NCBI GenBank assembly: GCA_965202585.1
Contig: OZ241829.1
Location: 61,566,001-61,630,000, forward strand
DNA: 64,000 nucleotides
Reading direction: 5' to 3'
Source: Thalia democratica
Taxonomy: Eukaryota
Of the stretch, positions 47,585 to 63,400 are shown in pieces (the stretch's first letter is position 1; every line of letters starts with the position of its first letter). A program made the translations under genes and the position numbers. Under the pieces are notes generated by a model. The model had not been told where the DNA came from, did not search any database, and was given only the letters and a program-made list of their open reading frames with translations.

Positions 47585-50106
47585 ATAGTATCCCTAGTAT
47601 ACGTTTTGTGAAGCTTAGTGCAAAAATTATTTCTCCTTATCTTTCTAAATTGTATAATAAATTTGTTGAGTATGGTGTGTTTCCAGATTCGCTCAAATTT
47701 GCTGAGGTAATCCCAATTTATAAATCTGGTAAAAAAAATGACAAAAATAACTACAGACCTATTTCTCTTTTATCCCCATTTTCAAAAATTTTTGAGTTTT
47801 TAGTGTGTGAGAGGTTGAAAAAATTCTTTTTGTTGAATGAGGTACTGCATGAGAAACAATATGGGTTTAGAGAAAATAGTACGACTGAACTGGCTGTGAA
47901 TCAGATTGTTGATGAGTTAATTGAGGCTGGTGAAAAAAATTGATAAATTGCTCTGTATTTTTGGATTTGGCTAAAGCTTTTAACATGGTAAATCACAAAA
48001 TTTTAATATCTAAACTTAAAAACTATAATATGAAAGGTACAATGTTAAATTTATTAAAAGACTATTTAAATGATAGAAGCCAATCAACTGTCATAAATAA
48101 TGTTGTGTCTGAGCGTGAAATTGTGAATGTTGGAATACCACAAGGTTCTTGTTTGGGTCCTTTGTTGTTTCTTGTGTATATTAATGATATTTTTTACTCT
48201 ACTGAGATAAATATGAGATTGTTTGCTGATGATGCCTGCTTGAGCTACCAACATAGTGACCCTGAGTATTTAAATGAAGTTATTAATAAAGAGCTGGTTA
48301 AAGTTGATAAATGGTTGCGTGATAATAAACTTTTTATTAATTATTAAAAAACAAAATTTTTGCTTTTCAATAAAACTTCAAAAAGTTGTGAATTTAGTGT
48401 GAATGTTAATGGTTTTCTTATTGAGCAGAGTGATAGTATAAAATACTTGGGTGTGGTTTTGGATGAAAAGCTGAATTGGAAGAAACATTTGAGTTCTCTG
48501 AAATCGAAATTGTCTAGGAGTTGTTATGTTTTGTCAAAATTGAGATATTATTTGGATACGAGTACTTTGATAATGGTGTATTATAGTTTGTTTTATCCGC
48601 ACATCCAATATTGTATATCTGCTTGGGGTGGTGCTGCTGACTGTTACTTAAAACCAATTGTTTGTATGCAAAAAAGAGTAATTAGGTATGTTTGTCGTGT
48701 GCCTGCCTTGACTACAACAAACCCTTTGTTTAAAAAAACTGGTGTACTAAAATTAAATGATGTGTATAGATTGCAAATTTGTAAGTTGATGCGTAATACT
48801 ATAACAGGATTTGATGTAGAACAAATAGATTTACACTTGCTAGCTCTGTGACTCACACAATACAAGATTTTCAAAGAAAAAGAATTTTATAACTGAAAGA
48901 CATAGAACAAGACTTGGCCTAAACTGCTTTAGGTATTTGGGTCCCAAGTTTTGGTCTAGTGTCCCTGAAACTTTTAAAAACTTAAAAAAAGATTGTTTTA
49001 AATTTAAATAAAAAAAATTTTTGTTGAATAACTACAAGGAGTAGATCTAGAGTGCTTCTGCAAGTATGTTTTTGTTTGTGTTGAAATTTGGTTGATGTTA
49101 TTGGGGCATCAGATTGTGGTGTGTTGGTCTTTATTTTCTGAATGTCCTGTTAATGTAAGAGTGATTGTTATAAATTATTGAAATAAATTTTGTTTATTGT
49201 TAATATATTTTATTTGTTTTTTTATTTTGTTATTGTGTTAGATTTAAGATAGTTCATTTCATTTATTAATTTTTTATTTATATATATTTTATTTATTTTA
49301 TTTTTTTTATTTTATTAGATATTATAGGTAAAACTTTAAATTTAGTACAAAATGTTTATTTTTTTTTAGTTTGTTTATTTATTTAATATCTATTTTATTT
49401 ATTATACTTACTTATTTTATTTATTTGTTTATTTATTTATTTTTTTTTTTTGAGTTTTGAACCAAGTTAATACTAAAAAAAGTTGTAAAACACTTATTAT
49501 TTTATTGATTTTAGTGTTAATGTATACATATATTTTATTTATTTTAATACAAATAGTTACTTTTTTTCCTACTTACAGTTTTTCTTTAGTCTAGCTTGTT
49601 TTTTCTAGAACTAAATACTTTAAATTAGATATTGGTTTATCTGAGTTTGCAACAGCTGATTGTGAGTTCACACTGGTGGCAGTGATCACATGATTGGATT
49701 GTTGATGTGTTTTTTGTTGTAGCGCCGGTGGATACTTACTTGGGGATTTGAGCTTCATCGTTTTCCCACACTTTGTGGTTTTTGATGTTGAGATTTTAGC
49801 CTTGTGAGTGTTTGCCAAATGGCGTGTCACCAAGGGTTTTGTTTTTTGAATAAAGGGTTAGGATTAGTTTTTTATTTTTGGTTAGTTAAACAATTTTGTT
49901 TTGTTTTTTTTTGTTTTTAGACAGGTTTAGTTTTATTTTTAATCAAAAAGTAATTTTTTTTTTCTTAGTAAATTTAAAAGATAGGGCAGGTGGAATAACA
50001 CGTGATGAGCTGAAACTCACTTGCATGACCTTCAGAAAACGTTTATCGTTGTAGAGGGGAGAGTGGGTTTCTTCTGATGTTTTTCTACCTTTAAAAAAAA
50101 AAAAAA
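47585..50106 (+). mobile_element. 5'-truncated, inactivated CR1-group (Crack/L2-like) non-LTR retrotransposon with long 3' UTR and poly(A)
   Basis: RT motifs NYRPISLLSPFSKIFE, QYGFR, FLDLAKAF, GIPQGSCLGPLLF, LFADD, KYLGV, YYSLFYPHIQYCISAWG, FRYLGPKFWSSVP. Frameshift near 47940, stop near 48345, frameshift near 48830, ORF ends at 49044, A-run at 50093-50106. Assignment of 49045-50106 as 3' UTR is inference. Confidence 0.9.
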
Positions 50107-51422: not shown

Positions 51423-54400
51423 ATGTCATCTCCAACGTCTGGATCTGGCAAAAAGCGCAGAGTAGTTTCAGGATGCAACTCAAGTCCAACTATTGCTGCT
51501 ATTTCATCCAATCAACAGGCTTCCGTTCTAGCTTCATCTAGACAACTTTTTGATGCATGTAGAAGTGGTGACCTTAGTAAAGTTAGTTTTTCATAAAGTA
51601 TATAGCAAGTAAAACAGAAAGTTAGTTTTTTAATAAAAATGTCTTTAAAAGTAGTCAATAAATATATATAAATCTACTCAGTTACTGCTTTGTATTAAAA
51701 CAAAAGTCAGTTTTATTTTTTTTTAAGAAATGCATTGACTACCCAATGGCCTTGAGTTAACATTAGTAAAAATGGATAAATTTTTAAAGTACACTCTTTT
51801 AGTTGGTACCCATAGTATTTAGTGTGTTTAATAAACTGTGGGTAGCATATTATTACATAGAAAGTAATTTATGTTGTTATTCTTATTTTATATCTTAAAG
51901 ACTTTTTGAATTATAAATAGAAACATTTAAAAATATATAAATTTACAGTTACTCAAAAATGGTTACGTGACAGTTCAGATTCTGACACTTTAAATTCTTA
52001 AAAAATATTTAAAATGCCATATCTAAAAATTTGGTATACATTTGAAAAATAAAAAAAGGGGTTTTAGATATGATTAATATGATCATGATTGTAAAAAGTT
52101 AAAAAATATGTTTATTAAAAGACTGAGGGGTTAGGGGTAACAGTGAATAAAAAACAAAAGGTTACTGACCGAGGGTAAGTTAGGGGTAACAATGATAGTA
52201 AAATAAATGTAAAAACAAAAATTATAAAAAAATAAAGTGTCAGTGCAAAGTTATCTGCTTGTGCAAAAGTGTCTTCGTGCAAAAGTGTCTTTGTGCAATT
52301 TAGTCCCCTTGTGCAAAAATGTTTAACACACAGAAACATGTGTTAGTGTAATAAAGAAAGAGTACTGTTTAACTTTGTTAATATTATGTTGAAACTAAGT
52401 ATATTAGCAACTCAATACATACCATAAGTTTTTAATACTAAAAATTTTGTACTCTAAAAATGTAAATAAACAAGAGCCTGTAGCTAAACTAGTGCATAGA
52501 TTTGCAAGAGGTGACTGTACTTGTTTTATAAATATCTTCTAGAAAGTATGTAATATTTTGCAATGTAAAATTAAAACTTCAGTAAATAATTGAAAAGGTT
52601 GCAATCCATTTTTATATACAGGGTTGCCACTTTACCTGGAAAGCTTGAAAAGCCTGGAATTTGACATTTTAGGCAACAAAAAAACATGGAACAACCTGGA
52701 ATGTTGAACAAAGTCACTGAAAAGACCTGGAATTTTAACAATTTTCATATGTTCAGTAGTAAAACTTTGGTTTGACTCAAATCGATCATATAAATAAAAA
52801 ATATTTCGTCATCATCAAAATTTTTTTTAAATTAAAAAAACATTTAAAGTAGCTTTACAGTATCTTTTCAATGGTTTTACACCATTTTACACAGTTTCTT
52901 ACCTTAAACTTAACTTTAAACTAAAAATAGACCCAAAAATGTGTACTTTTAAAAAATCTGGAAAAAAATTTGAAAAAGCCAGTGCAACCTTGTATAGATA
53001 TTTTTAATATTTTTACTTTTTGAGATATGGTACCTTAAGCTTTTTTTTAAGTACTTGATTTTTCTGAAATTGCAAAAAAATCAAAATAACAATTGTTTAT
53101 TAAAAAACAAACATTTTAATTCTTATTCTAATAGAATCAAATAGAAATAGATTCTATTTGAATAAGAATTGAAAATGTTTGTTTTTTAATAAACAAAAGA
53201 TCTCTTCAAAGCCTTTGTATAAGATTGAGACTGGTTTTTTTAATGGTTCTAACCATTTTTTGTTTTTGTTTATCTAAAATTCAATCCTGTCTGATCTTTA
53301 AAATCAAAAGAGGAAGACTACCTTCATCCCATTTTAATTTAACATTTAAAAAAGACTAAGTTTTTTAATTTAAGTTTAATGGTATTGGTATTTCTTTATA
53401 TTTAAGCAACAGTTTTTAATCAAGTTTTTGTATTCAGGTAAAAATGCTGGTAACAACTAGCAACGTTAACGGCAGAGACATGGAAGGCAGAAAATCAACA
53501 CCGCTGCATTTTGCTGCAGGATTTGGGAGAAAAGATGTTGTGGAGCATCTGCTGCAATACGGTGCAAACGTGCATGCAAAAGATGACGGGGGACTCATAC
53601 CTCTGCACAACGCTTGCTCCTTTGGTCATGCTGATGTTGTCACTGTTAGTTGTTAAAATTGAAAAACTTTTGTTTATAGGATTGTTGCCACTGTATTCTT
53701 GAAGGGCTATGAAGTTTTACAGTTTTATAATTTCTGAATCTTTAAATATTGTTTAATCTAAAAATTGTTAACAAACACTTAAATTTATATTTTTAATAGT
53801 TAAATCTAAATTATAATTTTTTTTTGATTTTTGTACAGTTACTAGCAGGGTTCCAAAAACTGCCTCTTTTATTAGATATTATCCCTTCTTAGATCTTGCT
53901 CTTACTAGTTATTGCCCCCTAATATGGCCTTTTTGTGAAACCCAGGTTTAGAATTTACATCAGGCAGGGTTCGTGCGCGTCAGGCTAAATTAGTTTTTTT
54001 GAAAAAAGATGAAAAACGTCAGGCTAAATCAGTCTTTTTATTTAAAAAATTGAGAATCTCAGTTTTTCTCAGTTCAAATGTTTGAAAATTTTTGATTAAA
54101 AAAAGTTGAGAAATCTTTTTAAGATCAAATTGAGATGTGAATTTATTTCTAAATAAAGATTCAGTTATTAAATCAAAATCAGTCAGTATTTGTAAAAAGA
54201 AACGCTTAAAACCTTTTGTTGAATCTCTAAAAAACTTTTAAGAATCTTCATTATTTTGTTTTGAGTAGATTATATATGGCATAATTATGAAAATTTATAA
54301 AAAAAATACAGTTTTTACATTAAAGTTTAGTTCAACAACTAAGCTGTTTGTTTGAATTTGTTTACATATCTATGTTTTTCAGAGCTTAGTTGGTTGAACT

Positions 54401-57400
54401 GTTTTAATTTCTAATTTAAAGACTGTTTACCAAATAATTTTTATATCAAAACTCTTAGCAGTTTAATCATATATTTTACTGTTTGTTTAAAGTTATTAGA
54501 GATATTCACAACACTAAAACTTAGCTTTAAGATATAAGTACTAAGTTTTGTGGGAGTACAAATTCTAGGTACAATTCATTTTCTTTACAATAACAAAACA
54601 TTAAAGTTTTTTTATTTATTTAAGTATAAACTTTTTTTATTTGATACGACATCAACAATCACTATATTTATTTAGAGTTTAGGATTTATAATTATAAATC
54701 AAATTTAAGTATTAGTCAAAGTACTATAATAAACACTTTTTACTTATTTTATTACTCGTGTAAGCGTTTCATTTTAAATTTTAATAAAACATGACACTGC
54801 TTGTTGTTTTGTTATAGATTTTCTGGTTATAATGTTTTTACTTAGTGCTTAATTGAATTGAACGATTATGTTTAGTAATATATATTAAATTTTTACACTA
54901 GTAATAGATTAGATATAACACTTATTTTAAAACTTATCACTGAATTTATTATGTTAAGGGCATAGGGAGGGGGGGGTAAATCTCCTTTTTCACAATTTAG
55001 TTTTATTTTATTGAGTTGTAACTAAGCTACGACTTGCTTTTTGCTGATTTTTAAAGCATAAAATGTTTTTGAGATAAAGCTAGTTGAAGTCGGAGACTAC
55101 AATAGTACTAATCAAGACCCCCCCAATACCTAAAATGACTTCTAAAGGGAATTTCCCTTACTTTGAAAAAATGTCAGGCTAAATTAATCTCAATCAGGCT
55201 AAATAAAAAAAAAATTCGCGCACAAACCCTGATCAGGACAAAATACTTAAAGCAGGATTGACAAAAAACCTAAAATCCTAGAACAAAAAGTGATTCGAAA
55301 TAAATTTGTAAAAGACCTGAAATAAATAAAAAATCTAAAAGACCGGGATTATTAAAAAAATTTTCATGTAAAATAATTAAACTTAAATTAGATATAAAGA
55401 GTTTTTCATGTAAAAAAATGTAGTTTTTAGAACTTTATTCACTATATGGCATGTTTAAAATACCATTACAGTATATTTTAAACATTTTCATACTATTTGA
55501 ATCATTTTAATGCTTTTAATTTAATTTTTTAACTAATATTGACAAAGACTTTTTTTTTTAAACCTGGAAGGAGTTTAGAAAACCTAAAACAATTTTCAAA
55601 AAACGTTTTGAATTCTTGTAAATAGCATGCTAAAACCAGTAAATACCAAGCAAAAATATTATAATTCTATGACTGCCGAAAATTTTTAAATTGCCTCCCC
55701 CGTACTATTTATTTGCACCTTTAGGAAACCCTGCACTGATTTGAACTATTTCTACGTTTTCTTGAATAAAAATTTGAAAAAGTGTTTTGTATTGCTAACA
55801 TACCTACTTTAAATGAATAAAGGTGAATTAAGAAAATTCAAATTTTACAAAATGTTTTCAAACTTAAAATATTTACAGAAGTTACTATTAAATACTTCTA
55901 TTATTACATTGCTTTGAAAATATATTGCCCGTAACAGATATTGTCGTTGAAATGTAATTTTTATAATCTTAATAATCAGTAGTGTATATTATTAAAATAA
56001 AATCGTTTTGCTGTTTTACCACTTCATATGGTCTGAATAAATTGCTCAAAAACCAATTGTGGAAAATTAATTATTTCCTAAAAAACATTTATTACTTTTT
56101 TCTTTATTTAATTGTGAGTAACCAGTAAGACTTATTTATTAATATTTACTTTATGTTTTTTTTTTAAACCAAGATTATTGGTTATTAATTATTTTCTGAA
56201 GTAAGAACTTTAGTTCAAATTTTATAAAAAATAGCAAATTCAAATAACTAAACAGATATATTTAGTTTTGAAAAATGTTTCTTTTACAATTCTATGTGTC
56301 CTTTTTTCATTATCAGTTTTGTAATAATTAAAAAAGTTAAGTATCTGTTTACTTTTTAATTTTTTTAGCTGTAGACCACAAATTAAGGAAATGCTCTATG
56401 TGGTATTTTCAAAAATTTTTGAGCACAAAAAAAAGCTTTTATTTTCTGACCAACAGCAGAAAAAAGTCAACTTTTTTACTTATACTTGAATTTAGTTATA
56501 TACTCTTTTAGAATAACTTTTTTGAATTTTTATAAAGGTTCTTAAATGAAAAAGTTTAAAACTGTTACTCAAAAGTTATAAAATATAGATTTTTAGGAAA
56601 GTAGTATTTTTTTTTGCCTTTCTACTTTGTGGCATCCATGAGGAGCCTATGATACTTTCGAACTTTAATTGTTTGTATTTTAAAAGTTAAACATATGAAT
56701 TATTGAAAAAGAATAAACAACTATTGACTTATTTATCAACGTAAAAAATCAACGGATTAATTAATTTTTGTGGGTATTTATTTTGTTTTGACAAGGAAAT
56801 TAGTTAAATTTTGAAAGCATTGCTCAATAAACCGTTTAAATGAAAAAAGTTTTGTTATTAGCAATTAATTGGTACATAAAATCATGTAAACACCTTTCGC
56901 TATATTCTAGAAATTAAAATGTATACTGAATAAATTTTAGGTTTAACTTATAGTTATGGGAAATATGAAACTTACGCAATTTAGGTTTACTCAAATGTTT
57001 TAAAATAGCTTCGAGTCTAGCTATTCTAAAATATAACGATAGTTAAAATATTTTGAATTTAATGTGAATAGAACCTGTTTTTATAATAGTAGTAATGTTG
57101 TTATTAAGATTATTAATAGTCTAATGCTCTGAAATATAACTTAAACGAAATATTTTCAGTTGCTACTGAAAGCTGGAGCGGACGCAAACTCGCAGGACAA
57201 TTGGAAATACACTCCGCTGCACGAAGCCGCAATCAAGGGAAAAGTGGACGTGTGCGTGGTTCTACTGCAGAATAAAGCCGACGTGCTAGTCAACAACTCC
57301 GACAACAAAACTCCCTTCGACGTTGCTGATAACACCGTCAAGGTTTGTGTTTAGACAATTTATCACATTAGTTGATTGCTATGTTTATCGCCTCAGCTTG

Positions 57401-60400
57401 TTTATCAAATAAGATGTTTTTTCTACAGTAATTCTATTTTTCTTAAACTAAAAACATGTCTGAGTTATATGCATAAACAAGTGTATTTAACATTAAACTC
57501 AACAATTGAAAACTTTTCAATTTGTTTAATGTGCTATAACATAAAACTTAACTAGTCTCAATTTAAACAAAACATCTGATAACAAAATCAACAACTTTAC
57601 AATGCCACAGGCGGTGTTGTCTGGCGACTTTAAGAAGGACGAGCTGTTGGAAGCGGCCAGGACTGGAAACGAGCAAACATTGCAGCAGTACTTGACACCG
57701 CTCAACGTAAACTGCCACGCTTGCGACGGCAGGAAAAGCACACCGTTGCATCTGGCTGCTGGATACAACCGGGTTCGTGTTCAATTTAAACATGTGTGGT
57801 GTGACTTACGCAGTCATAGTGTTTTTGTGCTGCAGTTTTAAAAACACAGTTTAACAGATTATTATTCGTTTACTAAACTATAAGTATACTTTACTTTTCA
57901 ATAAACTGTTAAATTTTACCGCAGACGAGGATTGTGTCGATGTTGCTGCAGCAGGGCGCCGACGTTCACGCCAAAGACAAAGGCGGTTTGGTGCCGCTTC
58001 ACAATGCTTGCTCGTACGGACATTTTGAAGTGAGTTTCATAAATTTGCCATTATTTGGAAACGAATTAATATTGTAATTTTGTTGTCAGAACATTTGTTG
58101 TTTAGTATGTTATGGTTTTGGCCTTGCTTTATAATTGCTCATTTGTTTTTTTTCTTCAACTGCTAGCTTAAAATAGTTGAAAATGTTTGTTACTTTAATA
58201 AACGTTTATAAGTTTATATACTGAATATAAACAAAACAATTTTACCTTTGTAGTTGATTAATCTACACAGTTTTTCATGCACAGGTAAAGTGTTCACAAT
58301 AATAAACTCATACTAATGCTGCATATAGCAGGTTGAGATGGCTAAGTTTTTCTTTAGTTTAAGCATATGCATAAAAACTGTTTTCATTTTAAATGAACCA
58401 TTCACACGCCGGCCTTATAATGTGACGTAATAATAGTGCAATTACTTTCGCCGGCCTTGCTATTAGCTATAATTTGACCGTTTTGCACGGAAATGCTTTC
58501 ACAGTGAGTTGCCTTAATTATCTGTTTTTGTTTATAGTTCAATGTTTTATTTTAGTTCAATACATATCTTTCACAATTTTTTTTTTTACTTTAAAAAGTA
58601 ATCTTGGTTCTTATGATTTATCGTATTGTTCTTATTACAGATTATAAAAAATGTTTTTTGTTAAGTAATAAGTTAAGTTAGCAAGACGACTTTCAACTAA
58701 CCTTTTTATTAGAGACTAAACGTAAATTATTTATGGTAAAACCTTTTACTTAAAATCATTAGAATAATTTATTTAGGCTGCATGAAGTAAGATTTATAGA
58801 CAAATTTATAATTGAAATTGAAAAATTATTAAAATGTATAACTTTCTGTAATGTAAACTTGGTTTTCTTTATTATATTTTGTAAAGTCATTCTTTTTTAG
58901 TTTTATTATTGAATTTAATAAACTCTTTGATTATGTATTTTTATTTACTAATTTGAAAGTTGTTATTACTATAGCTGTGTGACTGTAACATAAAAATTAA
59001 AATTTTAATAAATGATAAAGTCAAAAACTATTTAACTTCAAAAGAAAATTCTATTGGTTAATGTTATTTTACATATTTTTTTTAAGAGTTTTTTGTTCAC
59101 ATATCTTTAAGGTAGATATATAAGTTCAAATTACAGACTGTTCGTAAATTTTTACTAAGTAAAGTCTACTCTTCATTTTATTTTTACTATATAAAAAATA
59201 TCTGAAAAACTTTTATTGATAGTTTAGTTTATTTCATTTCAAACTAAAGTAAAAAGGTAAGTTAATCAAAAAAATTTTAACTGTATACATACAGTGTTGC
59301 AAAAAAACCTTGAACCCTGGAAAAACCTAGAGTTTGATAATTTAGAAAGTAAATATTTAGAACTTTTGAAATTTGAAAAAATAAAAAACTTGAAAAACCC
59401 TGAATCTTTAAGAGTTTTGACGTGTAAAGTTATAAAATTTAGATTAAATACGAAACATTTATTATGTGAAATAATAAGCACGTTTGAAGCAGCCTTGGAG
59501 TATCTTTTCAGTATTTTCACACTACCGAGCACAGTTTTTATATTTCCACAACTTCTCACAGGTAGCCGAGTTGCTGATCAAGCACGGAGGCGAGGTGAAC
59601 GCGGTGGACTTGTGGCAGTTCACTCCGCTGCACGAGTCCGCTTCGAAGAACCGGGTTGAGGTTTGCTCCTTGTTGCTGTGCCACAACGCCGACCCCACCT
59701 TGGTCAACTGCCACAACAAGACTGCTTGCGATGTGGCCGCTAACAAGTTCGTTTTATTTTGTTTTTTTTGGTTTGTTTTTGTATTAGAACAACAGTGATC
59801 TTCCTCTCAAGCAACTCAAAAATGCGTACTCGACAAGGAATGTATGTTAGCTGAAAAATAGGGATTTTCCTCTCATGTACGCATTTCGAACGCACCTCAA
59901 AAATGCGTATAATGCGACCTCAATAATGCGACAATAATAAATATTAGCTGAAAGTTTTGCTCTGGAAACGCTTTTGAATAAGCAAGTAGTTTGTGATTAA
60001 CTCATTTATATGTGTGCTTGTTCAATTTTTTTTATTTCTTGTTTGCGTTGTCTTCTAACAAAAAACTGCACCATTAAAGTTTGATGAACTAATGGGATAA
60101 AAATATATTATTGTTTGTTAATAAAGAATTATTGTAATATAATGAGTATAAAGGAAGTAAGAAACAATTTTAAAATTTTACTGCTAAATTTACATATAAT
60201 TTAACATGGTGTTTAGTCTATAGTTCATATCAATGAGTACAATAAAGTTATATTCAAATAGAATAGCATTATAATAAATATTAAAACTGATGATCCCAAT
60301 GAGGATAAAAATTCTATTGTAACAAAATTTTGCTTAATTAAAATTGTATTTTTCTCCTCGATAAAAGATGAAGTGGAAAACTCAATTTTTTTTTGTTTAC

Positions 60401-63400
60401 TAAAAGTATACAACTATTTGAACTTAAAACAAAATTTTAAACCTTGATAAGTTGTAAAACTAGTTTAAATTTTGAGTCGGTAAAAAACTGAAAGCAAGCA
60501 TTATTGTATTTTTGTACAACTACTTATATTTACTTCTCGAATTTATTAATTATTGATAAAACTTTAGTAGTTTTTATGTCAATTAGGTTTTTGAAGTGTG
60601 CTGAATTTTATGAAAAATTTTGAGGTATCAAACTTAATGTTTATTATGTTTTATTTAAAAATCCGGAAATAACTATAAGTAAAATTTTAATCATAAACTT
60701 TAAAACTTTAAATAGAATTTTTCATTACTTTAAAGCAGTTCGTTCTTATACAGGTGTCACGAAAATTAAGTATAGTTACGTTGAAAAAAAAACATATTCA
60801 TATATGTGCGTTGTACTTTTTTCCGAAAATTACTGCTATTTTTACCAAACATATGTTTTGTAAATATTTAAAATTTTATTTATTGTGATAAATGCTGTCA
60901 ACTAAATACTTAACTTAAATATTCTGACGCAATCAATAAAAATTTATAGAACAAACTTTTTTTTTGTTGTATACTGTTTCGATTGTTTATATTTTTAAAT
61001 AAGTTCTAGTTAAAAAATATATAATAGGTAACTGTTTTAGATTGTGTACTATTAAAACTCTACTCTTAACAAACTAATCTGATGGTAGATGTATTGAAAT
61101 AATAATTGAATAAAAATTAGTATTTAAAATGTTATTAATAAGAACAAAATGTTTTTGCTTCAGTACTTTCAAAGTACTATATCTCTAGTTGTAATTGTAG
61201 GTGTAAAAAAATTGATGCATTTGAGTATCTTTATAACATTTTTGAGTTCAAGGAAAGTTTCAAGTTATTTCTACAATATCTAAATATTTTTTTTCTAGCT
61301 TATATAAGTATTCCATTTGTGGTTTTAACTTACTACGGTTGCGTTGGCCCATGAAATATTTATATGTAAAATGTAATTTGTCTATATTTTGTCTTTAGAT
61401 TTTGGTAATCTAAATGAAATTTTATATAGAAAATTATGTGAAGCATGTAAATATAATTTTTAAGTTTAATATAAAATAATAATAACCATATAAAATTTTA
61501 GTACAACTTTTTGATTATACTGGCAAAGAAGTTTTTTTTTCATTTTTTTTTCCTTATTCCTTAAAAACACGAACTAAGTAGTTCGATGATTCAAAACTGA
61601 ATGTGTAGCTGATTTTATTTAATTTTATTTGAAACTTTTGTTGTTGTTACGCTGAAAGTTTCAGCGAAGGAATTTTCACGTCACACGTAATGTGTACGAG
61701 TTTCTTATAAATGTTTACATTGCAAATACCAAGAATGTTTAGAACGAACGTAAACTACTTGTCTGTGTGAAGTTCAAATACAAGCATACATAAACTACCT
61801 ATAGGATACATAAATTTTGGGAGTCATGTGTTAATATTTTGGTCAGAACAAGGTAAATAATAAAATTAATAAAACGCAGACAAAGTTTCTACACTTTTAC
61901 ACTACAATTTTTATACTTAAATATAATGTAATAACCTTTTTTATTTATTTTAGTAGTGTGGAAAAAAAATTTATATGGCACATAAAAAAAAAATTCACTC
62001 TAGAAATATTATTCTATTTGAAATTAAATTTAGTGCTATAAAGTTATTTATTAAATTTAGTTTTTTTTTATGAAATATTTTAAGCATAGGTTTCAATTGT
62101 TTAAATGAATAATATCGTACAGGGTTGCCAAAACACCTGGAGTCCTGAAAAAAAAAACAGAATAAGAATAAAAAGAGTTATGTATGATTAAAGAAAATTC
62201 TTAATAAAACACATTTAAAATAGCTTTACAGGATATTTTCAATGTTTTTATAATATTGAGTTTTTTACCTTAATTTAAATTTACACTAAAATTGGACCAA
62301 AAAACTTGGAGGAAATTTATAAATTCTTGATTAAATTTACAAAAAACCTTTGGCAACCCAGTATCGAAATAAATCATATGTTTTTTAAAGTATGTTTTAG
62401 GTATATTACATATATTTAGTTTCAGGCCATTAGGGGTTGAATATTTTTTTAAAGTAGTCTTATAATTTACATAAAAGTTCAAAGTGAAGATTTGAGATAT
62501 AAGTGTTCTAATTTGAACGTTTTAACCTCAAAAGTTAATTTTAGTTATAAAACAGTAAAAAACGACTGATATCTTAGTTTTTATATGTAATTTAGTTCAA
62601 TAGGTTCTTTAGGTTTAATGACTTCAATTGGTTATTTATAAGAGGCGCAAATTAAAGAGTCGATAGTAGACTACTTAAATAACATTTTTCTTCATTTAGT
62701 TTTTAAGTTATTGTTTTCAAACTTTCTTAGACTATTTTTTTTATAAATTTTGTACAACTTGTAGAGAACAAATAATTGATCTTTTTTTTGGTAGTATAAC
62801 TTTTAGGTCTTTTTTAAAATTTCATTTTCTACAAGTTGTTCGTACTATTTAATAAACCATTTCTTGCCAATCTCTTGCCACCGAAACCGGTCGCGAATAA
62901 AATATACAATTTGCATAAATCTATTTAAATAAGCTCTTTACATCCCAGTAAATTGAGCATTCTTTTTTAGTTAAGGCTGATATAAGTATGTTAAATAACT
63001 ATATAAACCATTTCTCTAAATCTTGAACTAAGTTCAAAAATGAAGTTACTGGTAGATTTTAAGAAAATCGGCCATAAATTTTAATGATTCTATACAGTTG
63101 TATCCAAAATATTTTACATAGCCAGTTATATCTCCGAAGTTAATTGTTTTTTTTTTATTTTATAAAAAGTATCTTGTATTATATACGGTAAGTTAAAAAA
63201 AAAAACTATTGTTGATGTTTGTAAAAAAAATGTTGGACCCCTATGGACTTAATGAATGGTCTTTTTAAGTACTTCAGATTCTTGCACTCACAATAATTTT
63301 GCCATTTTATAATACATTATATATATATATATATTTTTAACTTTTGTTAAAAAAGTAAGAGAAGCGTGTAAGTACAACTACTAAAATGAAACACTTTTAT

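Follow-up and report, generated by a model that had tools for sequence, protein, structure and literature searches.

A spliced-leader-headed retroelement copy in tankyrase intron 1 of Thalia democratica and its probable derivation from a Penelope-like element

The locus in tankyrase intron 1

The window, i.e., the whole 64,000-nt stretch of Thalia democratica DNA analysed here, contains part of a tankyrase gene, of which an open frame with coding exon 1 and, further downstream, exon 2 with the first ankyrin repeat cluster are recognised (Table 1). The translated exon from ~53437 matches the Tankyrase-1 chains 5jhq, 3utm, and 6urq in one stretch. Between the two exons, at 53093-53338 (+), lies one aged copy of a dispersed repeat family; thus, the element sits in sense orientation within intron 1 of tankyrase, the intron in which the preliminary description of this DNA had placed it. 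The copy is composed of an inverted arm, a variable junction, and a spliced leader (SL) continued by ~172 nt of element body, and its family alignment covers 53093-53340. The body is 93.7% identical to the family consensus and carries the exact distal 28-mer of the family at 53310-53337. Both the extent of the element to 53338 and its repeat-family membership lay beyond the sight of the preliminary description.

Table 1. Features of the element copy and of the bounding tankyrase exons (positions in the window; PLE, Penelope-like element; RT, reverse transcription)
Feature	Position	Strand	Remarks
Open frame with tankyrase coding exon 1	51423..51596	+	exon end probably near ...GDLSK
Inverted arm	53093..53137	-	duplicates element positions 1-46: SL 53122-53137 plus 30 nt of body
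Junction of the two arms, caaatagaaatag	53138..53150	.	entirely partial SL fragments
Exact 16-nt SL relic, ATTCTATTTGAATAAG	53151..53166	+	marks the 5' end of the reverse-transcribed RNA
Element body, ends CCCATTTTAAT	53167..53338	+	last ~172 nt of the putative parent PLE 3' UTR
Internal hairpin, aatggttctaaccatt	53242..53257	+	presumed internal RT start region; role by analogy with PMC11167929
Distal tail, consensus positions ~120-187	53270..53338	+	full arm only, never mirrored by the inverted arm
Tankyrase exon 2, first ankyrin repeat cluster	53437..53653	+	acceptor ~98 nt downstream of the element

The two arms form a palindrome of 104 bp (53093-53196) that is centred on a pair of leaders, namely the exact 16-mer and a 15/16 inverted copy, ATTCTATTAGAATAAG, both of which had already been noticed. 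The spacer between them measures 13 nt, reduced to 11 nt by counting the flanking C/G pair. It consists of leader material throughout: SL-derived 6-mers cover each of the 13 positions, and the first 9 nt read TTCTATTTG on the minus strand, in agreement with the partial leader that had been seen in the loop. As reported earlier, neither leader is followed by GT; the right copy continues with AATTGAAAATG, the left copy with AATT-AAAATG, from which one base is deleted. Apart from this 1-nt deletion, the inverted arm shows one substitution in the leader. With 46 positions, it belongs to a minority short class that is represented by three of the 22 studied copies (the window copy, L014, and L025). 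Matches to the 16-mer with up to two mismatches occur four times in the window, while 0.33 are expected from shuffles and not a single shuffle reached four.

A convincing target site duplication (TSD) was not found for the window copy, for which TAACA is the best candidate. Rfam searches at E<=10 over 52000-54500 gave nothing but miRNA- and CRISPR-like matches at chance level, hammerhead, snRNA, and SL RNA being absent. Folded as RNA, the full arm is not more stable than shuffles (z=0.22), and its structure is limited to two local hairpins. Elsewhere in the window, two further near-matches to the 16-mer (60249-60264 (-) and 62918-62933 (+)) and a 28-nt match to the element body (58177-58204) were observed; since the element structure is absent around them, we regard them as fortuitous or decayed. 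Most likely, the window copy is now without function and constitutes neutral intronic debris for the tankyrase gene.

The spliced leader and the repeat family across the genome

The 16-mer is identical to the published spliced leader of Ciona intestinalis (PMC1488885 Table 1; PMC7986045), as the preliminary description had recognised. It occurs 1,299 times in the genome in exact form versus nine times in the control. Gene-like SL+GTAAGT units are arranged in a 15,085-bp tandem, and SL+GTAAGT+hairpin units, the form expected of SL RNA genes, are present on C26, C9, and C10. The leader in the window was rejected as an SL RNA gene, since it is followed by AATTG instead of a GT donor. Copy number and tandem units fit the tunicate-type SL host that had been suggested from the window; with these and its identity to the Ciona leader, the 16-mer is the putative SL of the host.

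Exact leaders are found in head-to-head pairs 41 times genome-wide (control, 0), while SL-SL tandems, i.e., stacked relic leaders, number only two. A gapped pattern for SL pairs gave few matches, since it misses mutated arms, which are numerous, and the several pairs with an overlap at a GAATTC centre. SL-centred head-to-head pairs are distributed over at least seven unrelated families, several of them with hammerhead motifs. Several families of hammerhead mini-elements in the Thalia democratica genome are SL-headed and occur in such pairs.

For the family of the window copy, a first look yielded 545 candidates genome-wide, and all of the 40 scored ones match on both strands. Head-to-head arrangement is seen in 22/22 studied copies, a sample that was retrieved with a hairpin-containing query and is therefore no measure of how often the inverted arm is missing. 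The preliminary description had offered an "SL-capturing repeat family" as an alternative; this proved correct, with the window holding one of many copies. In all family copies, conserved sequence starts exactly at the first base of the leader on both arms, the exact 16-mer being the first conserved sequence on either side, and the junctions in between vary, even among copies within one subfamily. SL-derived 6-mers cover 46% of the bases in 34 junctions versus 4.6% in control segments, and the leader fragments are present in both orientations. Some copies are devoid of a junction and possess a perfect GAATTC centre alone.

The outer ends of the composite are unlike each other. Full arms reach positions 187-196 and terminate in CCCATTTTAAT, poly(A) being absent; inverted arms end at positions 114-121 in 12 of the 13 clearest copies, with a second cluster at positions 42-46. 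In most family copies, the outer end of the inverted arm is found 8-15 nt 3' of the internal hairpin, hence, the hairpin zone is presumed to be an internal start region of reverse transcription. The distal 28-mer is confined to one arm in 15 of 16 pairs. TSDs surround the whole composite; they are 9-14 bp long in the 13 clearest copies, with best matches ranging from 5 to 14 bp overall. The two arms derive from one template: divergence is 5.3% within a copy versus 9.2% between copies (the observed value was reached by 0/10,000 permutations), subfamily variants on one arm recur on the other, and three copies have identical arms. Young copies with identical arms include C8:40331500 and C4:10148200.

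Probable parent element and proposed origin of the head-to-head copies

At 169 other genomic sites, the identical body is preceded by TTTTTGTTTTCTACAG, a polypyrimidine/CAG acceptor (reversed control, 0). In the resulting TTTTTGTTTTCTACAG/AATTGAAAATG junction, the acceptor takes the place of the leader, i.e., these sites are parent loci of the kind sought by the preliminary description, with an AG acceptor exactly at the border of leader and body. Of 43 GIY-YIG (PF01541) matches, 30 are followed on their own strand by such an acceptor at a distance of 449-480 nt. The longest GIY-YIG frames attain 918 aa, and units in tandem measure ~3.2-3.4 kb. The 99 acceptor sites listed include 24 head-to-head neighbour pairs, four same-strand pairs, three of which are spaced by 3,174-3,367 bp, and one tail-to-tail pair. 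Parent copies lie, e.g., around C1:2654800-2659100, C1:110353100-110356600, and C2:73105200-73109100. Judged from coordinates, namely the match to GIY-YIG, the length of the frames, the constant distance to the acceptor, and the size of the units, the parent is probably a Penelope-like element (PLE).

A derivation from this PLE is in line with several properties of the family. The 3' terminal sequence is common to the window element and the GIY-YIG-encoding repeat, complex inverted insertions characterise both the family and the parent, the latter with same-strand pairs in addition, and a tail extension is present at one end only. A hammerhead was not detected with Rfam at E<=10 over 52000-54500; such a motif of the parent may sit upstream of the acceptor. 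In our assessment, the feature quite probably belongs to a short, non-autonomous retroelement derived from a PLE, of which it is an old copy that is no longer active. Since the SL meets the body exactly at the acceptor, the family appears to have arisen when PLE RNA was SL-trans-spliced and then reverse-transcribed.

The assembly of a copy can be envisaged as follows. The parent PLE would have a single long frame, with the GIY-YIG endonuclease at its C-terminus, and contain a strong 3' splice site (TTTTTGTTTTCTACAG/AATTG) in its 3' UTR, ~172 nt before the element end. Occasional joining of the 16-nt host leader at this acceptor would create a short capped RNA of SL plus ~172 nt, which would keep the 3' sequences used by the PLE reverse transcriptase. 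The PLE enzyme would nick the target and copy the SL-tagged RNA to its very first base, whereby the full arm would begin at the distal site, ...CCCATTTTAAT, and the inverted arm, primed from the opposite DNA strand, would begin internally, usually at position 114-121 and in the window copy at ~46. Finally, the two cDNA ends, each finishing in the SL complement, would be joined after short template switches, leaving leader fragments in the junction.

Among the other readings, the one that fares best likewise starts from an SL-trans-spliced PLE fragment, but lets the cDNA fold at the RNA 5' end and copy itself for 45-135 nt before it is joined to the target. Such a snap-back, the cause of inversion favoured by the preliminary description, would account for arms that always belong to the same subfamily and are identical in young copies, for junctionless copies with a perfect GAATTC centre, and for junction fragments of the leader in both orientations; moreover, the GAAT end of the SL complement can pair with ATTC 5 nt upstream. 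However, the outer ends of the inverted arm are clustered in an 8-nt interval (114-121) just 3' of the hairpin and to the second cluster, which points to preferred start sites rather than arbitrary stops, and a block imposed by the hairpin would end self-copying before position 91, not after 106. Furthermore, purified PLE protein nicks and extends both target strands in vitro, with two start sites of reverse transcription defining a one-sided tail (PMC11167929). Priming on two strands thus fits the clustered outer ends and the one-sided tail better, and we regard snap-back as rather unlikely, although not far-fetched. What stands of the earlier proposal is an inverted 5' duplication that is made at insertion; its cause by snap-back is doubtful.

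The main reading of the preliminary description, a single retrocopy of a trans-spliced host mRNA with SL, 8-nt 5' UTR, and start codon, draws on the succession of leader, AATTGAAA, and ATG, and SL+UTR+ORF retrocopy-like sites do exist elsewhere in the genome (e.g., L040). However, the "ATG" opens only MFVF-stop, poly(A) is lacking, and the body is multi-copy and coincides with the non-coding 3' end of the GIY-YIG-encoding repeat. Unless the body were a host exon, the multi-copy family, the acceptor sites, and the GIY-YIG parent refute this reading, which we consider extremely improbable; the part of it that survives is the genuine SL relic, the mark of an RNA 5' end that was reverse-transcribed in full. 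A MITE or foldback DNA transposon with the 16-mer in its inverted repeats by chance, which would suit the palindromic shape, the copy number, and the AT-rich intronic site and had been named as a way for the earlier proposal to fail, is scarcely credible in view of a palindrome that is central instead of terminal, two unlike outer ends, TSDs without fixed length, junctions that vary within one subfamily, arm boundaries at the first base of the leader, the same SL-centred geometry in at least seven unrelated families, and a body with a retrotransposon parent.

Significance and comparison with known systems

To our knowledge, it is still largely obscure how PLE insertions acquire their peculiar inverted and tandem layouts. 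Here, the spliced leader serves as an unambiguous stamp of the RNA 5' end on insertions made in vivo. According to this stamp, both head-to-head arms extend as far as the template's true 5' end, the junction would be made by short template switches at that end, and the inverted arm would start at a preferred internal site, without the distal tail. The SL-marked insertions thereby agree with, and extend, the single study in which a PLE enzyme was examined in vitro. Beyond that, host trans-splicing can apparently carve a new mobile mini-element out of a retrotransposon transcript; no description of a trans-splicing route to non-autonomous PLE elements was found in the literature searched. The search also retrieved nothing linking spliced leaders with Penelope-like elements or with hammerheads, and nothing relevant on SL in thaliaceans.

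Tentatively, and with the balance slightly against it, PLEs in this genome may be SL-trans-spliced routinely at a conserved terminal-repeat acceptor, and might need this for a capped mRNA 5' end. If so, the mini-copies would represent an in vivo record of copying to the cap, two-strand priming, and two defined start sites, for which we know of in vitro data from one lizard element only.

Among the systems closest to the window family are the Penelope/Poseidon-type PLEs, with which the parent shares the late position of the GIY-YIG domain in a frame of ~800-900 aa and partial tandems of ~3.2-3.4 kb. Typical PLE insertions contain inverted copies and are extended by a tail on one side (PMC8557442), and the head-to-head insertions, the one-end tail, the variable TSDs, and apparently two start sites of reverse transcription are features in common (PMC8557442, PMC11167929). 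In contrast to published inverted PLE copies, which are described as 5'-truncated, the inner arm ends here correspond to a complete, SL-marked RNA 5' end; further, the tail is ~67 nt long versus 30-40 bp in other PLEs, and the mobilised piece is without a hammerhead motif. The latter also separates the family from the animal non-LTR retrozymes and hammerhead mini-elements, which resemble it as short non-coding elements copied by PLE machinery, but differ from it in that the window family has a directly identifiable autonomous parent carrying the acceptor.

In dinoflagellates, the host leader DinoSL at the 5' end of genomic retrocopies is the proof of a trans-spliced RNA intermediate (PMC6050394, PMC5585692, PMC12014239), and the leader in genomic DNA at the window copy is the counterpart of this. 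The tagged RNA, however, would be a retrotransposon 3' UTR fragment and not the mRNA of a host gene, the animal concerned is of tunicate type, the copies are head-to-head dimers, and stacked relic leaders are nearly absent. Twin priming of L1, finally, also leads to an inverted 5' segment by target-primed reverse transcription and to TSDs around the whole unit; while it inverts another part of the RNA without duplication, the inverted arm described here duplicates the 5' region of the direct arm.

The window copy and its repeat family

The exact spliced-leader (SL) 16-mer and its inverted copy, both noted in the preliminary description, were re-found and form the inner ends of a palindrome (see table), each being followed directly on its 3' side by AATT(G)AAAATG instead of GT, and the 13-nt spacer between them starts with another partial inverted copy. 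In the whole window, four 16-mer matches with at most two mismatches are observed versus 0.33 expected by shuffling. The identification of the 16-mer as the Ciona intestinalis spliced leader agrees with the published sequence (PMC1488885; PMC7986045), and the flanking exons and the Tankyrase-1 structure match bear out the location in tankyrase intron 1, where the element lies in sense orientation with exon 2 ~98 nt downstream. It aligns to family copies from 53093/53095 to 53340, is ~6% diverged from the family consensus, and has a short inverted arm of 46 positions. A single substitution and a single deletion separate its two arms, and no convincing target-site duplication (TSD) was found around it, the best candidate being TAACA; most plausibly, the insertion is old and inert.

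Coordinates of features in the window and at further genomic sites (C, contig; L, individual genomic site)
Feature	Position	Strand	Remarks
Three successive ORFs (111, 135, 163 aa) upstream of tankyrase	47608-48851	+	RT-like motifs (YRPISLL..., FADD); looks like a decayed non-LTR retrotransposon
ORF upstream of element, tankyrase context	51423-51596	+	holds tankyrase coding exon 1
Interspersed repeat just upstream of, and unrelated to, the element	52615-52976		72-78% identity to stretches in L021, L011/L030 and L026
Palindrome	53093-53196		
Inverted 16-mer copy	53122-53137	-	15/16 identity
Exact 16-mer	53151-53166	+	ATTCTATTTGAATAAG
Next tankyrase exon	from ~53437	+	Tankyrase-1 structures matched in one stretch
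Gene-like SL units (L043, L044)	C26:7129, 22214, 37299 ...		15,085-bp tandem
Gene-like SL units near contig starts	C9:9868 (L052); C10:9275 (L053)		
Other SL-centred families (L047-L068), examples	C4:38497736/38497812; C1:58893195/58893221; C2:37580021		head-to-head pairs

Within the 801-Mb assembly to which the window belongs, 545 first-look candidates turned up, and each of the 40 scored has matches on both strands, which upholds the earlier suggestion of a repeat family. The same layout recurs in the aligned copies: first the inverted arm, next a junction 0-32 nt long that varies between copies, and last a full arm made up of the 16-nt SL plus ~172 nt (the body). The body terminates in ...CCCATTTTAAT, to which TT, TTC(T) or slightly more is added in some copies. 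On either arm, conservation sets in precisely with the leader's first base. The 22 copies studied form a sample biased toward hairpin-bearing copies. The proposed reading of SL, UTR and ATG as the 5' end of an mRNA had to be abandoned, since the frame from the 'ATG' encodes only MFVF-stop and no poly(A) is present at the element's end.

A probable Penelope-like parent carrying a splice acceptor

Scanning the genome for the body preceded by anything other than the ...AAG of the SL yielded 169 exact sites, whereas the reversed control gave 0. Almost every site reads TTTTTGTTTTCTACAG|AATTGAAAATG, with a textbook polypyrimidine tract and CAG acceptor falling exactly at the SL/body junction; the parent with an outron AG that had been envisaged is thus found as regards the acceptor, the locus itself being a repeat and not single. 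GIY-YIG domains were located by a Pfam scan of the genome, and in the range covered by the listed acceptors, 30 of 43 hits have a same-strand acceptor at a constant distance of 449-480 nt downstream (median 461). The longest open frames through the domain measure 779-918 aa, and same-strand acceptor repeats are spaced 3,174-3,367 bp apart. Judged from these coordinates, the parent is very probably a canonical endonuclease-positive Penelope-like element (PLE) with a long frame, a C-terminal GIY-YIG domain and ~3.3-kb units in partial tandems; the SL family works like a PLE and is, very probably, a PLE derivative.

On sequence grounds, we consider the following origin of the family likely: a PLE transcript would receive the SL by trans-splicing at its 3'-UTR acceptor, and the short, capped, SL-headed RNA, retaining those 3' sequences that the PLE enzyme uses, would then be retrotransposed. 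In tandems, the acceptor in the upstream terminal repeat may give the PLE mRNA its capped SL 5' end.

Integration geometry and the origin of the inverted arm

When placed with TSD-refined boundaries, the outer end of the inverted arm lies at consensus positions 114-121 in 12 of the 13 clear-TSD copies, immediately downstream of a short hairpin (AATGGTTCTTACCATT) at positions 91-106. In a minority class, to which the window copy belongs, the end lies at 42-46. The distal tail (last ~67 nt) is never mirrored in the inverted arm of the aligned copies. Across the genome, head-to-head pairs were counted in which each arm has an exact proximal 28-mer and one or both arms an exact distal 28-mer; the distal 28-mer is confined to a single arm in 15/16 (SL-type 7/7, parent-type 8/9). 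Exceptions to the one-tail pattern are a parent-type head-to-head pair with the distal 28-mer on both arms (C2:45221766-45222801) and a site with two inverted distal 28-mers only 307 bp apart (C1:60965996-60966330). The 99 acceptor sites listed include 24 head-to-head neighbour pairs, 92 to 7,123 bp apart, and only one tail-to-tail pair. The SL family and its parent thus have one integration geometry in common.

In vitro, a PLE protein purified from Anolis cuts both strands of the target and extends them, reverse transcription starting from two adjacent internal sites, with the interval between them appearing as a one-sided genomic 'tail' (PMC11167929); Craig et al. (PMC8557442) name as PLE hallmarks 5'-end inverted copies and a tail confined to one end. 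The clustering of outer ends immediately downstream of the hairpin and the occurrence of a single tail in each pair both fit two start sites on opposite strands, and we lean towards the PLE mode reported in vitro as the source of the inverted arm, in preference to the snap-back inversion proposed initially. Snap-back self-priming of the cDNA is consistent with both arms always having the same template, with the SL complement ending in self-complementary GAAT/ATTC, and with the perfect GAATTC centre of some copies; however, it gives no account of self-copying halting within an 8-nt window beyond the hairpin, and we regard it as less likely, the clustered outer ends and single tail favouring two-strand priming.

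Subfamily-diagnostic substitutions are mirrored between the arms of a copy, in one genomic copy (L017) even a change within the SL, and three copies have identical arms. Mean arm divergence is 5.3% within a copy versus 9.2% between an inverted arm and another copy's full arm, a within-copy value reached by none of 10,000 permutations. Junctions and arm lengths differ inside one subfamily. From these observations together, every insertion makes its palindrome anew on a single-arm template, and the structure is not passed on as palindromic DNA. SL- or SL-complement-derived 6-mers cover 46% of junction bases (160 of 351 nt, 34 junctions), versus 4.6% in same-length control segments (maximum 74 nt in 2,000 controls), and run throughout the window copy's junction; such fragments would be expected if short template switches had occurred repeatedly at the template's extreme 5' end.

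TSDs (e.g., AGGTATTCTTGA, ATATAGAACTA, TCGTCTGATATT, AGTTATTAAATAG, CTAAATTTTATTTG) surround inverted arm, junction and full arm together, so that each composite was inserted as one event; in the 13 copies where they are clearest, they measure 9-14 bp. Their variable length favours target-primed reverse transcription and argues against a cut-and-paste transposase.

Other SL-bearing sites and comparison with known systems

The genome contains 1,299 exact copies of the 16-mer versus 9 of the reversed control, and two exact SLs stand head-to-head, 0-30 nt apart, at 41 sites, versus none in the control. These fall into at least seven unrelated families, i.e., at least six besides that of the window, with inverted arms from 7 nt to >74 nt; in several, a hammerhead motif (CTGATGA...GAAAC) lies directly 3' of the SL, stem I being formed from bases beside the leader. 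Gene-like units on contigs 26, 9 and 10, in which the SL is followed by GTAAGT and a 6-bp hairpin (AAGGAAGCAAUUCCUU) and preceded by a conserved GC-rich region, are candidate SL RNA genes; a clear Sm site was not seen in them. Many further SL+GT sites resemble SL+UTR+ORF retrocopies. Three sites (L040 at C1:85133284, L031, L035) with SL, short UTR and open frame, e.g., MSVEAEIKALVESSKIGKQLKEKL, look like SL-tagged retrocopies of protein-coding mRNAs. Direct SL-SL tandems, only two in the genome (C7:53564770-53564801; C4:49189961-49190001), may reflect rare re-trans-splicing of a relic leader.

A link between spliced leaders and PLEs was not found in the open-licence papers searched, which is no proof of its absence. 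Contributed here are the autonomous parent with its acceptor, the one-tail and clustered-start geometry, and the junction analysis. With the SL-relic retrogenes of dinoflagellates, the present family shares an SL encoded in genomic DNA; unlike them, it consists of a retrotransposon fragment, belongs to a different host and is arranged head-to-head.
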